64,000 nucleotides of DNA from Malacoraja senta (GCA_038087875.1 CM075981.1:2418001-2482000), one strand, 5' to 3'; positions 45,182-53,372 are shown, counted from the first letter of the stretch. The notes: generated by a model not told the origin, from the letters alone. Numbers and translations: made by a program.

Positions 45182-45721
45182 TCAGTTGGAGCTTTCATTG
45201 ATTGTCAGCCAGGCCCATACTTCACATGCCTTATTATCATGAGTGGACCAGACACAGGAATATACCCCTTCATCTTTCTCTTGTACGCCTGCCAGGATCA
45301 ACGAGGCATCCATGTGAACATGGACATCTGGATGCTCGAACCTCCATTGGGTACCAGATCGCTTAGATTGGTCAGACGTTCTAATACCATACCTGGCAAT
45401 GATAACACCGTCTTTTCTCCAAATAACATTCGAGAGGTGATGATAATCTCTGGATACTTTACAAGGCAGCGTAATAATGCTACCCGCAGATGCAAAGAGC
45501 ATATTCTCGCTAGTCGATGCACGGTGATCACCGTCAGAACCTGGCTCGTCCGTGCATCTTGGAAGCTGTTCATCGTTGACTTGCCGAGGCGCCCGTGCGT
45601 TCCACCCGGGCAAGTTTGCTTCCTCTCCCCATTCTCTGGAGATCGGACCTGTTCCAGTTCCGGAGACTTGCCACACCATCTCCACAAGGACCATGAATCC
45701 TATCCATCTCTGCAGTCCCAT
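45182..45721 (-). CDS. Predicted secreted single Ig V-type domain protein, paralog A (179 aa)
   Basis: ATG at 45721, 4 nt after acceptor tttcacccacag|; the ORF-track start at 45748 is a GTG in the intron. Hydrophobic N-terminus; ITLPC...VIW...DASLIL...DEGVYSC with Cys spacing of 69; stop with no donor or TM segment. Confidence 0.85.
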   Translation of the reverse strand: MGLQRWIGFMVLVEMVWQVSGTGTGPISREWGEEANLPGWNARAPRQVNDEQLPRCTDEPGSDGDHRASTSENMLFASAGSIITLPCKVSRDYHHLSNVIWRKDGVIIARYGIRTSDQSKRSGTQWRFEHPDVHVHMDASLILAGVQEKDEGVYSCVWSTHDNKACEVWAWLTINESSN

Positions 45722-46149
45722 GTTCCTGTGGGTGAAACAATGGGTCACCTTATTGCAACTCAGTAGGATTCATGATGACATTCCCTGAACCCGCCCAGAG
45801 TTGGGGAATCGAGAATCAGAGGACATCGGTTTAAGGTGAGGGGGGGAAAGATTTAATGGGAAACTGAGGGGTGACTTTCTTACACAAAGGGTGGAGGGTG
45901 TTTGGAACGAGCTGCCGGAAGAGTTAGATGAGGCAGGTACTATCACAATGATTAAGAAACAGTTAGACAGGTACATTGATAGGACAGGATTAGAGGGGTA
46001 AGGGCCAAAAGCTTGAAAGCGCGCACCACCAGACTCAGGAACAGCTTCTTCCCCTCTGCTATCAGGCTTCTGAACTGGGGGAACAGTGAACAGAGACAAT
46101 CCCACCCCCATCACTCACAGACACTTGAAGGATCCACAGGGGTGGTTAC

Positions 46150-46195
46150 CAGCTCCGGAGTCTCCACACAGGGTGACGGGGCCGGTCTTGTTCAC
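46150..46195 (-). other. Predicted non-coding exon 1 of paralog A
   Basis: Donor CTG|GTAACC at 46150/46149. The TSS is inferred at 25-30 nt from the TATA box. Conserved in paralog B. Confidence 0.55.
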
Positions 46196-46216
46196 ATCTC
46201 CTGCCATCGCTCGCTC

Positions 46217-46303
46217 CTTTTATACTTACTCCCGGCTTCTCCTGACCCTCATTGCCTACGCTCACGTACTTTCAACCAATCACTGCCTCCCACGGAGCAT
46301 TGG
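46217..46303 (-). promoter_or_regulatory. TATA/CCAAT promoter of paralog A
   Basis: TATAAAAG (46217-46224 on -) and CCAAT boxes at 46276-46280 and 46299-46303. Confidence 0.65.
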
Positions 46304-49962: not shown

Positions 49963-52110
49963 CCCCACTAACCCCCCCTCCCTCTCCCTCTATCCCCTCC
50001 CTCTCTCTCTCTACCCCCTTGCTCTCTGCCTCTCTCCTTCTCTACCCCCTCCCTCTACCCTCCCCCTCTACCCCTCCTCCCTCTCTAGGTATTGAAGAGG
50101 GAGGGTGAAGTGGAGGAGGGGATGCGGAGAAATGTGCCGCGATTGCACAGTTGGGGGCTATGCATGAGTGGTGCAATATTGCGTTGGGCGAACGGGTGAG
50201 TGGTGGAATATTGCGTTGGGAGAGCAGACCAAATGTATCTGCACTTGGTCTGCACAGTAATTTTATATCATTCTATCAGGTCTATAGGTGTCTCTGTAGT
50301 GGCAGCCCTCCACTGTCTACCCTGGCCTGTCATGATTTTATACTTACACCATAAGTACACAATAAGGTCACAGTTATTCCAAGTAAACCAGACCATGATA
50401 GTACAAGACAAAGTACGTGGGGCATCACCAGTGGTGCAGTGTCCATCGGTGTTGTGTAGGGTTGAGGTGGGTGGCGTAGGGTTGTGGTTGGGGTTGTGCA
50501 GGCTGGTTCAACAACCTTATGCTTGCTGGGAAGAAGCTGCTCTGGAACCTGGAGGTCACGGTTCTCAGGCTCCTGTACCTTCCCCTCGGTAGTGGTGATA
50601 AGAGAGTGTGGCCAGGGTGGTGTGGGTCTTTAGCTGGAAGACCAGGCTCCATACGGAGGTAAGAAGGAAGCTTGTGACCTCCGTCCTGGTCAGCAGAGTT
50701 AACACAACTTCTCTACACACTCCCAACGAGGGTCAAAACTGGACTAATCAGCAGCCCTAACAATGCACGAGGGCAATGCATGGGCGACACAGCGGTAGAG
50801 TTGCTGCCTTACAGCGCTAGAGACCCGCCTTCGATTGTGACTACAGGTACTGTCTGTACGGTGTTTGTACGCTCTCCCTGTGACCGTGTGGGTTTCCTCC
50901 GGGTGCTCTCGTTTCTTTTCAGATTGCAAAGACGTGCAGATTTGTAGGTTAATTGGCTTCAGTAAATTGTCCCTAGTGTGTAGGTTAGAACTAGTGTAGG
51001 GGTGATCACTGGTTGGATTGGACTCGGAGGGCCGAAGAGCCTGTTTCCACGGTGTATCTCCAAGCAAAACAGAACTAAACTAAACTAATTTAAAGGCAAC
51101 CCCATGACACTTAACCCGGCGATGTTGCCCGTAGTGAGCAAGAGTTGCACAAAGTTCACACCCAACTCAATGCTGGCGTACAAAGAATCACTCACACCGG
51201 CTGTCTTCAGGGCAGGCAAAAGAGGATTTATTTCCATTAATTGTACATTTACCGGTGCAAGCAGGGTCAGTTCTCCTCACTGCATGCGATCCACGCTCAC
51301 ACCTTCCACGCTGCTCATCTTTATACCTTTACTGTTCCCTACTTAGTGTCATAGTCAAACAGCACGGACAAAGGACCTTCCCCCAATACCATGTGCTCTA
51401 ATTTTGCCCACTAATCTCCTATGTGGGACCTTATCAAATGCTTCCTGAAAGTCCAGGTACACTACATCCACTGGCTCTCCCTTGTCCCCAGATCCTCTGG
51501 CCACTAGTACCAGGGAGATTGTTTGTGTTCTCCTTAGTGAAGACGGATCCAAAGTACCTGTTCAACGTCTGCCATTTCCGTGTTCCCCATAATAAATTCG
51601 AAATTTTAGTCTTTAAGGGTCCAATTCTGCCACTTCACATATCTAAAGAGGATTTTACTATCCTTTATATTCTTGGCTAGCTTACCTTCGTACCTCATCT
51701 TTTCTCCCCGTATTGCTTTTTTAGTAATCTTCTGTTTCTCTTTAAAAGAGTTACCCAATCCCCTGGCTTTCCGCTCATCTTTGCAATGTTATACTTGTTC
51801 CCTTTTATTTTTATAGTGTCCCTGACTTCCCTTGTCAGCCACGGTCGCCCCTTACTCCCCTTGGAATCTTTCTTCCTCTTTGGAATCCAGGTGATCCGGT
51901 TTTGTCCCACATCCCAGAGACGTGCATGTTTGTACGCTAATTGATCAGTGTAAATTGTATCCAGTGTGTGGGATAGAACTAGTGTATGGGGTGATCACTG
52001 GTCCCCGTTGACTCTGTGGGCCGAAGGGCCTGTTTCCCTGCTGTACCTGAACTAAACTAAACTAAACTAAACTAGACTTTGCTACTGACCCTGGGACAGG
52101 CCCTGCTGAA

Positions 52111-52650
52111 TCAGTGGGAGATTCTCAGCTTGGTCAATAATTCACATATCGGTTCATTATGGGCCTGGGACCAAACACAGGAATATATCCCTTTATCTTT
52201 CTCTTTTACGCCTGACAGGAGCAACGCGGCATCCTGTTTCCCATGGACCATTTCATGCACGAACTTCCAGTGGACATCAGGTCCCTTGTAAGTATCAAAT
52301 ATTCTACTATCGTAATTGGCAATTTCAACACCATCTTTACTCCATTTAACATGCATGGGATAATTGTAATCTTTGGATACTTTACAGGGCAGCGTAATAG
52401 AACCACCCAGAGATGCAACGAGCACCTTCATGTCAATCGATGATAGGTGATGTCTGTATGTATCAGAATCTGTCTCGTTCGTGCATCTTGGAAGCTGTTT
52501 ATCGTTGACTTGCCGAGGCGCCCGTGCGTTCCACCCGGGCAAGTTTGCTTCCTCTCCCCATTCTCTGGAGATCGGACCTGTTCCAGTTCCGGAGACTTGC
52601 CACACCATCTCCACAAGGACCATGAATCCTATCCATCTCTGCAGTCCCAT
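52111..52650 (-). CDS. Predicted secreted single Ig V-type domain protein, paralog B (179 aa)
   Basis: Same acceptor and ATG context as paralog A; ITLPC...VKW...DAALLL...DKGIYSC; stop at the homologous position (actgattcagcaggg). Confidence 0.85.
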   Translation of the reverse strand: MGLQRWIGFMVLVEMVWQVSGTGTGPISREWGEEANLPGWNARAPRQVNDKQLPRCTNETDSDTYRHHLSSIDMKVLVASLGGSITLPCKVSKDYNYPMHVKWSKDGVEIANYDSRIFDTYKGPDVHWKFVHEMVHGKQDAALLLSGVKEKDKGIYSCVWSQAHNEPICELLTKLRISH

Positions 52651-53218
52651 GTTCCTGTGGGTGAAACAATGGGTCACCTTATTGCAACTCAGTAGGATTC
52701 ATGATGACATTCCCTGAACCCGCCCAGAGTTGGGGAACTTAGAACATCGGTTTAAGGTGAGGGGGGGAAAGATTTAATTGGAAACTGAGGGGTGACTTTT
52801 TTACACAAAGTGTGGAGGTTGTTTGGAACGAGCTGCCGGGAGAGTTAGTTGAGGCAGGTACTATCACAATGATTAAGAAACAGTTAGACAGGTACATTGA
52901 TAGGACAGGATTAGAGGGGTAAGGGCCAAAAGCAGGCAGGTGGAACTAGTTTTGATGGGACAAGTTGGTGGGCGAGGGCAAGTTGGGCCAAAGGTCTCGC
53001 TGTATGACTCTATGACTCCATCACTTGTCCCACCCCGGTCATTCCTCCTTCTCCCTGGTCCTGTCTAGCAGAAGGTACAGAAGCTTGAAAGCTCGCACCA
53101 CCAGACTCAGGAACAGCTTCTTCCCCTCTGCTATCAGGCTTCTGAACTGGGGGAACAGTGAACAGAGACAATCCCACCCCCATCACTCACAGACACTTGG
53201 ATCCACAGGGGTGGTTAC

Positions 53219-53372
53219 CAGCTCCGGAGTCTCCACACAGGGTGACGGGGCCGGTCTTGTTCACATCTGCTGCCATCGCTCGCTCCTTTTATACTTACTC
53301 CCGGCTTCTCCTGACCCTCATTGCCTGCGCTCACGTACTTTCAACCAATCACTATCTCCCACGGAGCATTGG
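53219..53372 (-). promoter_or_regulatory. Promoter and non-coding exon 1 of paralog B
   Basis: Donor GTAACC at 53213-53218; TATAAAAG at 53286-53293; CCAAT boxes at 53345-53349 and 53368-53372. Confidence 0.65.

Follow-up and report, generated by a model that had tools for sequence, protein, structure and literature searches.

The stretch of DNA analysed here, hereafter the window, comprises 64,000 nt of Malacoraja senta sequence (GCA_038087875.1 CM075981.1:2418001-2482000) and carries two related genes, A and B, both on the minus strand. The open reading frames (ORFs) of gene A (45721-45182) and gene B (52650-52111) are both intact, with 179 codons counted from the ATG, and the two products share 63% protein identity. 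An AATAAA signal is found ~300 nt past each stop codon and is conserved in both genes, and no further copy besides A and B occurs within the window. Genes A and B are real, intact paralogues, as proposed in a first-pass annotation of this DNA, which had described a tandem pair; the family is however larger than two copies. The same annotation had described germline, non-rearranging genes encoding a signal-like start and a single immunoglobulin (Ig) V domain with nothing after it, a description borne out by the ORFs, Pfam and AlphaFold.

Pfam ig, V-set and Ig_3 scored above their cut-offs over residues ~75–165 of both products, with no other Pfam domain detected, and the products belong to the V-set of the immunoglobulin superfamily. 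AlphaFold, run with the family alignment, returned residues 72–175 as a confident V-type sandwich with strands A' to G, including C' and C'', whereas residues 1–69 were low-confidence and disordered. Cys87, Trp101, Asp150, Tyr154 and Cys156 are invariant in the family alignment and the DxGxYxC motif is present. Furthermore, all intact members possess two extra cysteines, Cys56 in the linker and Cys166 just past the FG loop, the latter at a position where PVR has Ser. Their presence in every intact member points to a family-specific second disulfide, likely Cys56-Cys166.

The sole hydrophobic stretch of these proteins is N-terminal (residues 6–17, mean Kyte-Doolittle (KD) hydropathy 1.8), and as the best 19-residue window in the whole protein has a KD of 1.05, a transmembrane (TM) segment is absent. 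The hydrophobic start has the layout of a signal peptide, with Arg in the n-region, a 12-residue h-region and V-S-G/A at positions -3 to -1, and 18 of the 21 positions encoded by leader codons 1–21 are invariant in 12 family members. From this we infer a cleavable signal peptide, cut after VSG or VSA. Further downstream, a candidate convertase site, RxPR/Q, takes the form RAPR, REPR or RVPR in 11 of 12 intact skate copies, and trimming at this point, as the propeptide of the first-pass annotation would require, is possible. At the other end, the stop codon directly follows the G strand in all members, the orthologous NCBI models share the same stop, and neither gene has a GTRAG donor near the 3' end of its coding sequence (CDS). 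The G strand is germline-encoded, leader and V domain share one exon (there is no leader intron), and neither the recombination signal sequence (RSS) heptamer CACAGTG nor the nonamer ACAAAAACC was found on either strand within genes A and B. The lack of a TM segment, RSS and 3' donor reported at first pass was thus confirmed. A GPI-anchored, Thy-1-like protein was also considered and ruled out, as there is no C-terminal hydrophobic tail. On the opposite strand, the coding exon of gene A is spanned entirely by a 199-codon antisense ORF (window 45167-45766, +), probably a by-product of the sense ORF, with a shorter counterpart at 52447-52695 in gene B.

Relatives of these genes are few. Matches to a word-seeded search were confined to six models labelled "uncharacterized protein" on a single Leucoraja erinacea chromosome and one model from Rhinoraja longicauda, and a HMMER profile search of 1.8 billion representatives added one full-length relative, the "nectin-1-like" protein XP_069798310.1 of the electric ray Narcine bancroftii. 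The remaining profile matches among the best 150 were proteins with several Ig domains, whose scores add up over the repeats. No further relative came from word-seeded searches that used the family alignment or the Narcine protein, the ESM Atlas yielded only generic small V-set clusters, and in the literature we found no paper describing the family and no mention of the Leucoraja LOC numbers. The family is therefore unstudied and so far restricted to batoids. In the Narcine gene, a 1.3 kb intron separates a short 5' exon from a single exon with leader, linker and V domain, hence the layout is older than the split between skates and torpedo rays; the arrangement of leader and V in one coding exon, as first annotated, is real and has been kept from skates to Narcine.

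Within skates the family is expanded. In the best-matching sequencing run, depth was 30 over the V part of gene A and 260–440 over the leader, and this leader/V ratio suggests ~9–15 leader copies in the Malacoraja senta genome. A stretch of ~112 kb in Leucoraja contains at least nine V genes, interleaved with two full chitinase genes (GH18+CBM14) and GH18 fragments. The copies have spread by ~7 kb tandem duplication with the 5' intron conserved, and neither a poly(A) relic nor a target-site duplication was evident, hence the retroposed origin suggested at first pass found no positive support, although the founder of the family may have arisen in this way. The ORF, four cysteines, Trp101 and DxGxYxC are kept in 12 of 13 retrieved copies, despite V-region synonymous divergence (dS) of up to ~1. 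The broken Rhinoraja copy (L003:1312-1887) has its B-strand Cys replaced (…MYYKIS…) and its C-terminus frameshifted, with a perfect leader block. Two Leucoraja copies, L006:15220 and L007:3371, lie ~7 kb apart on the chromosome and differ by one residue, which indicates that the family is still duplicating or that whole-gene conversion is ongoing.

Several lines of evidence place the V domain with the membrane-distal domain (D1) of nectins and PVR. The top Foldseek match of the V model in the Protein Data Bank (PDB) was nectin-1 D1 (E 5e-9, TM 0.80 on target), followed by CAR, JAML and TIGIT/PVR, and the best full-domain PDB matches of the family profile were PVR D1 (E 2e-12), CD226, JAML and nectin-2. 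For the Narcine protein, 26 of 29 PDB matches were PVR, nectin-1/2/3 or CD96, including every match with E <= 0.002. When the gene B protein was searched alone, DCC and antibody V domains ranked first, hence the nectin/PVR link runs through the family profile. V-V binding in the PVR family is defined by an AX6G "lock" and a T(Y/F)P "key" (PMC10486284), the former located in C'-C'' and the latter in the FG loop. In Narcine, ATSAPHRG aligns on PVR AVFHQTQG (the AX6G lock) and TYP on PVR TFP. Two of three distinct Leucoraja 171-aa proteins keep AX6G (AVFTKGKG and AVFTDRNG) without the key, and the third has Gly for Ala. On these sequence comparisons, A and B are putative soluble, D1-only, truncated derivatives of the nectin/PVR family. 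The first-pass view that the architecture could not be recognised has consequently been abandoned, as Foldseek, the family profile and the Narcine motifs all identify a V domain of nectin/PVR D1 type. Kinship with the V domains of rearranging antigen receptors (Ig/TCR/IgNAR) was ruled out, there being no RSS and a profile that favours PVR/nectin.

The skate proteins share with the D1 domains of nectins, PVR and nectin-like proteins the V-set fold and an RDASL...ED.G.Y.C core, and the Narcine member has both lock and key. They differ from that family in having no V-C2-C2 ectodomain, TM segment or cytoplasmic tail, with leader and V in one exon, and in adding a cysteine pair, a ~50-residue disordered N-terminal linker and a multi-copy, fast-diverging organisation. 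TIGIT, CD226, CD96 and PVRIG carry V domains of the same subfamily with the same lock-and-key face, however these are single-copy membrane receptors with signalling tails, and orthology to the skate genes is not implied. UrIg and UrIg2 are non-rearranging, antigen-receptor-like genes of elasmobranchs, UrIg2 being V-C1-C2-C3 and linked to Ig/TCR loci (PMC12227049). They likewise provide germline, non-rearranging elasmobranch V domains, whereas A and B are V-only and of nectin/PVR type, and their family adjoins chitinase genes.

The two halves of each gene have evolved very differently. Sliding identity was calculated from an alignment of both window units and two units from Leucoraja. Identity between paralogues and species is 93–100% across the promoter, exon 1, intron, leader and 3' flank, whereas it falls to 60–80% in an island of ~360–390 nt covering the mature linker and V domain, from about codon 51–58 to the stop. 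Even in two Leucoraja copies whose flanks are 98–100% identical, the V island is 83–95% identical. Genes A and B show zero synonymous and zero non-synonymous differences across codons 1–50. Substitution rates were compared pairwise only, among 12 intact copies (66 pairs), with pooled counts taken from four independent close pairs. Leader dS was 0–0.15 in all 66 pairs, even where V-part dS was ~1. V-part dS was 0.2–1.0 and the ratio of non-synonymous to synonymous divergence (dN/dS) 0.6–1.8, highest in the youngest pairs (1.7–1.8). In the four close pairs, the proportion of synonymous sites that differ (pS) was 0.14–0.20 in V and 0.04 in the signal and pro parts. The most variable parts are the linker beyond Cys56 and the BC, C'C'' and FG loops, and 18 core positions are invariant. 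Transitions approximately equal transversions in the V-coding part of close pairs (e.g. 16:18, 25:23, 47:58; window, L001, L003, L005 and L006), which is unusual for neutral change in vertebrates.

The V tree comprises two deep clades, with gene B grouping with two Leucoraja L001 copies (support 96/98), hence the V lineages are older than the species split. The tree of the 5' block has a tenth of this depth and its groupings do not follow the V clades, and at residue 20 every Leucoraja copy has Ala, whereas the window and Rhinoraja copies uniformly have Gly. Such discordant histories on either side of a point inside one exon indicate recombination. The simplest reading of these patterns is that gene conversion homogenises the 5' module, and that converted V regions are not retained. 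A conserved prepro region with a hypervariable mature part is also known from conotoxins, snake-venom PLA2 and frog skin peptides. The skate family resembles these in that the mature part is far less conserved than the signal/pro region, introns and flanks, with dN at or above dS; however, the fold is unrelated, the skate border lies inside one exon, and the conserved block has demonstrably recombined between paralogues.

Two other accounts of the V island were weighed against this one. The copies could be evolving almost neutrally, as redundant recent duplicates whose constraint has relaxed or which are turning into pseudogenes, as might be expected from a V dN/dS of ~1, not significantly >1, and from the one clearly broken Rhinoraja copy. 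We regard this as improbable, since lost constraint cannot make a coding island diverge 5–10 times more than the adjoining intron and 3' flank, and ORFs and core (fold) residues have nonetheless survived dS of up to ~1 in 12 of 13 copies, with V lineages kept as orthologues across species. Alternatively, the V segment could be the target of a mutational process, be it hypermutation in the germline or conversion in patches from V donors that have diverged. This would fit the synonymous divergence, which in V exceeds that of the same exon's leader by a factor of 3.5–5, and the youngest Leucoraja pair, with ~4.5 synonymous V changes (dS 0.056) against 0.005–0.01 in the intron and 3' flank; the near equality of transitions and transversions, and an excess of adjacent substitutions in more diverged pairs, point the same way. 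We also attach little probability to this account: neither of the two youngest pairs shows the excess of adjacent changes, which rate heterogeneity would be expected to produce, no tract from a donor was identified, and the borders of the island match the mature coding part on both sides. As the 3' border is the stop codon, selection is favoured over targeted mutation.

Upstream of the coding exon, the promoter block of gene A (Table 1) recurs almost unchanged in copy B, in all three distinct Leucoraja 5' blocks that were aligned and in two of the Rhinoraja copies. In the remaining two of these four copies, conservation begins only a short way upstream of the TATA box. Both genes have an acceptor, cacag/GAAC, four bases upstream of the main ATG. 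The donor of exon 1 is ambiguous, as two sites compete: G/GTAACC after 46150 (A) and 53219 (B), and a better CT/GTGAGT at 46119 (A) and 53191 (B), 31 or 28 nt further downstream; it is this second site that the NCBI models of the Leucoraja erinacea orthologues imply. Of the two-exon model given at first pass, the promoter, 5' exon and acceptor therefore stand, whereas its donor (46150/53219) is rivalled by the better 46119/53191 site. In two of the four Rhinoraja longicauda copies (L003:123-389 and L003:8807-9073), the TATA/exon-1 module is inverted and located ~850 nt upstream of the coding exon, retaining only ~50 nt upstream of TATA; the other two copies are normally oriented. This is either a true inversion or an assembly error, and an inverted module would account for the single-exon CDS of the NCBI model there.

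Table 1. Features of genes A and B, in window coordinates.
Gene	Feature	Position	Strand	Remarks
A	Core promoter	46218-46303	-	CCAAT 46303-46299; inverted CCAAT (ATTGG) 46280-46276; TATAAAA 46224-46218
A	Exon 1	46119-46195	-	5' end inferred from TATA spacing; alternative donor after 46150
A	Intron	45726-46118	-	Mostly antisense fragment of LINE (long interspersed nuclear element) tail/high-copy repeat
A	Codons 1-21, signal-peptide-like segment	45659-45721	-	Cleavage predicted after VSG
A	Codons 22-50, conserved disordered pro/linker block	45572-45658	-	Ends RAPR/QVN
A	Codons 51-179, variable linker with conserved Cys56, then V domain	45185-45571	-	
A	V domain, model residues 72-175	45508-45197	-	Cys87, Trp101, Cys156, extra Cys166
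A	Stop codon	45184-45182	-	
A	Putative 3' untranslated region (UTR)	44873-45181	-	AATAAA at 44878-44873; conserved in copy B
B	Core promoter	53287-53372	-	CCAAT 53372-53368; ATTGG 53349-53345; TATAAAA 53293-53287
B	Exon 1	53191-53264	-	5' end inferred; alternative donor after 53219; 3-nt deletion relative to A
B	Intron	52655-53190	-	Extra ~140 nt insert relative to A
B	CDS, 179 codons + stop	52111-52650	-	
B	Codons 1-50, conserved leader/pro block	52650-52501	-	
B	Codons 51-179, variable linker + V domain	52500-52114	-	
B	Putative 3' UTR	51804-52110	-	AATAAA at 51809-51804
A, B	Exon-1 ATG (ATG1)	A 46207-46205; B 53276-53274	-	In mRNA only if transcription starts further upstream

The reading that we favour, with moderate confidence, is that A and B each encode a secreted, free-standing nectin/PVR D1 V domain that acts as a soluble binder and has evolved as two modules. 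Transcription would start ~30 nt after the TATA box, giving a short, probably untranslated 5' exon spliced to one coding exon, and translation would begin at MGLQRW, with the 21-residue hydrophobic start removed as a signal peptide. The following disordered stretch of ~50 residues is perhaps trimmed at RxPR/Q, and the V domain would be held by its canonical disulfide and the second pair, Cys56-Cys166. As there are no C2 domains, membrane anchor or tail, soluble binding through the V face would be its only mode of action. The likeliest role would be that of a decoy or ligand for partners of nectin/PVR-type V domains, namely viral attachment proteins or PVR-family immune receptors. The two modules are the part of this reading that the data show: gene conversion keeps the 5' block (promoter, exon 1, intron and leader) uniform, and the linker and V domain are exempt from it, which gives a germline panel of differing V domains. 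Soluble forms of nectin-1 and CD155 derive from genes for membrane proteins, through shedding, alternative splicing or engineering, whereas the skate has dedicated V-only genes in many diverged copies. As a working analogy for function, soluble viral receptors, including cell-adhesion molecules, bind viral surface glycoproteins and neutralise viruses, and soluble nectin-1 and soluble CD155 resemble the skate proteins in being free receptor V domains in solution able to neutralise virus (PMC5796187).

A number of observations weigh against this reading. Both PVR-family motifs are lost in the window copies: the AX6G position reads ARYGIRTS in A and ANYDSRIF in B, with no Gly at +7, and T(Y/F)P is replaced by STHD in A and SQAH in B, hence binding to PVR-family partners is not implied. 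The signal peptide was predicted by eye and hydropathy, and the convertase site is replaced by RSYW in one Leucoraja copy and by IDPR, without the P4 Arg, in Narcine, so that only PRQV is conserved. Nor is V-domain diversification clearly adaptive in the four close pairs, where the ratio of non-synonymous to synonymous differences per site (pN/pS) is ~1.2 and not significantly >1 (P ~0.2), and dN/dS did not differ significantly between CDR-like loops and framework (Fisher P 0.86). ATG1 has a strong context (G at -3 and +4), and would, if transcribed, give a 210-aa product with a buried hydrophobic segment. Finally, there was no transcript support, as run searches with the whole of gene A and with the leader alone returned only DNA-type contigs. 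The eight contig sets examined contained unspliced genomic pieces reaching from exon 2 into the intron, with no exon 1-exon 2 joint. One 216-nt contig (run X8) matches up to the acceptor region and then departs; at a depth of 3.6 and 89% identity it is too weak for a splicing call.

The start codon and the chromosomal neighbourhood each give rise to a further alternative. If the protein started at ATG1, it would be 210 aa in gene A and 209 aa in gene B (31 and 30 added residues, respectively), and its hydrophobic stretch would be internal, making it a signal anchor or leaving the protein in the cytosol, and in either case not freely secreted. ATG1 is indeed in frame through the GTGAGT donor in both the window and Leucoraja copies, in a strong Kozak context, the six Leucoraja proteins are annotated from it (NCBI models of 200–221 aa), and the Narcine model likewise has an in-frame upstream ATG. 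However, transcription normally begins 25–32 nt downstream of TATA, and only 17 nt separate ATG1 from the first T of this box. In all four Rhinoraja copies the ATG1 frame is disrupted by a +1 insertion within exon 1, the main ORF being uninterrupted in three of them. Furthermore, gene A and Leucoraja differ at three places in the extension, each time non-synonymously, and the exon-1 peptide of Narcine is unrelated to that of skates, with alignment resuming at the second Met and hydrophobic core; a hydrophobic stretch of 12–14 residues is also too short to span a membrane. From TATA spacing, the Rhinoraja frame break, the non-synonymous differences and the unrelated Narcine peptide we judge ATG1 to be unused, hence it is probably not translated and exon 1 non-coding, and a start there is quite unlikely. 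The non-coding exon 1 of the first-pass annotation was accordingly retained on TATA spacing and the Rhinoraja frame break, qualified by the in-frame ATG1 through the second donor that the Leucoraja models use.

The V proteins could otherwise act with the neighbouring acidic chitinases (GH18 + CBM14) as a split-gene analogue of VCBPs, binding bacteria or chitin in the gut or stomach. VCBPs of amphioxus and Ciona possess two V domains and a C-terminal chitin-binding domain in one polypeptide. The skate proteins are alike in being secreted (as predicted), germline-encoded, diversified V proteins from a tandemly expanded family, and the interleaving with chitinase genes over ~112 kb of Leucoraja would suit such a partnership. 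The skate link to chitin consists of chromosomal neighbourhood only, however, with one V domain of nectin/PVR type, no chitin-binding module of its own and CBM14 found only in the neighbouring Leucoraja chitinase genes. Adjacency is weak evidence, since tandem duplication can carry unrelated neighbours along, and no GH18 catalytic exon was found in the window, nor any GH18 exon within 10 kb of the Narcine gene. We consider this partnership unlikely.

Extending the favoured reading of secreted nectin/PVR-derived V domains to the whole family, batoids would possess a germline repertoire of about a dozen such domains with a uniform secretion module and a pathogen-driven V part, serving innate recognition or as virus decoys, possibly at mucosal surfaces with chitinases. 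This broader proposal is possible but doubtful. If true, it would describe a recognition or decoy system built from the V domain of an adhesion molecule and not from antigen-receptor V genes. Cartilaginous fishes are the oldest lineage with antibody-based immunity, hence non-rearranging V genes in this group bear on the origins of recognition systems. The family would represent a second route to a diversified panel of soluble V domains, through truncation of a nectin/PVR gene to its ligand-binding domain, tandem expansion and a split between 5' and V modules. Given expression and binding to viruses, microbes or PVR-family receptors, the proteins would constitute a lineage-specific humoral defence or means of immune modulation, and also a natural source of small, stable V-domain binders. 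Were the genes silent or neutral, the locus would still provide a clean case of partial gene conversion with its border inside an exon.

Repeats occur both within gene A and elsewhere in the window. The repeat in the gene A intron (45800-46080) reaches a depth of 1e5–1e6 in whole-genome contigs, and a plus-strand ORF in this intron contains a repeated ...RYRSL...R.RNSFF... motif, which we take to be a LINE ORF2 tail. Despite its high copy number, the intron repeat is 100% identical over 60-nt blocks among paralogues and across species. The 3' UTR of gene A carries a high-copy insert resembling a short interspersed nuclear element (SINE) at ~45047-45140, with the same depth in whole-genome contigs (1e5–1e6). 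The remaining long ORFs of the window are transposon parts, namely DDE_3, GDSL-esterase ORF1, endonuclease and reverse transcriptase, and represent LINE and DNA-transposon debris. In a LINE at 57188-61196 (+), ORFs encoding a GDSL-esterase-type ORF1, an Exo_endo_phos endonuclease and a reverse transcriptase follow one another, with related LINE copies at 15349-16331, 32449-33221 and 8118-8564. A DDE_3 transposase fragment is located at 20201-20752 (-; Pfam E 2.6e-8). Downstream of gene A, a tandem array with a 32-nt unit (43480-43652) was detected as four overlapping 77-nt copies that are 70–100% identical.

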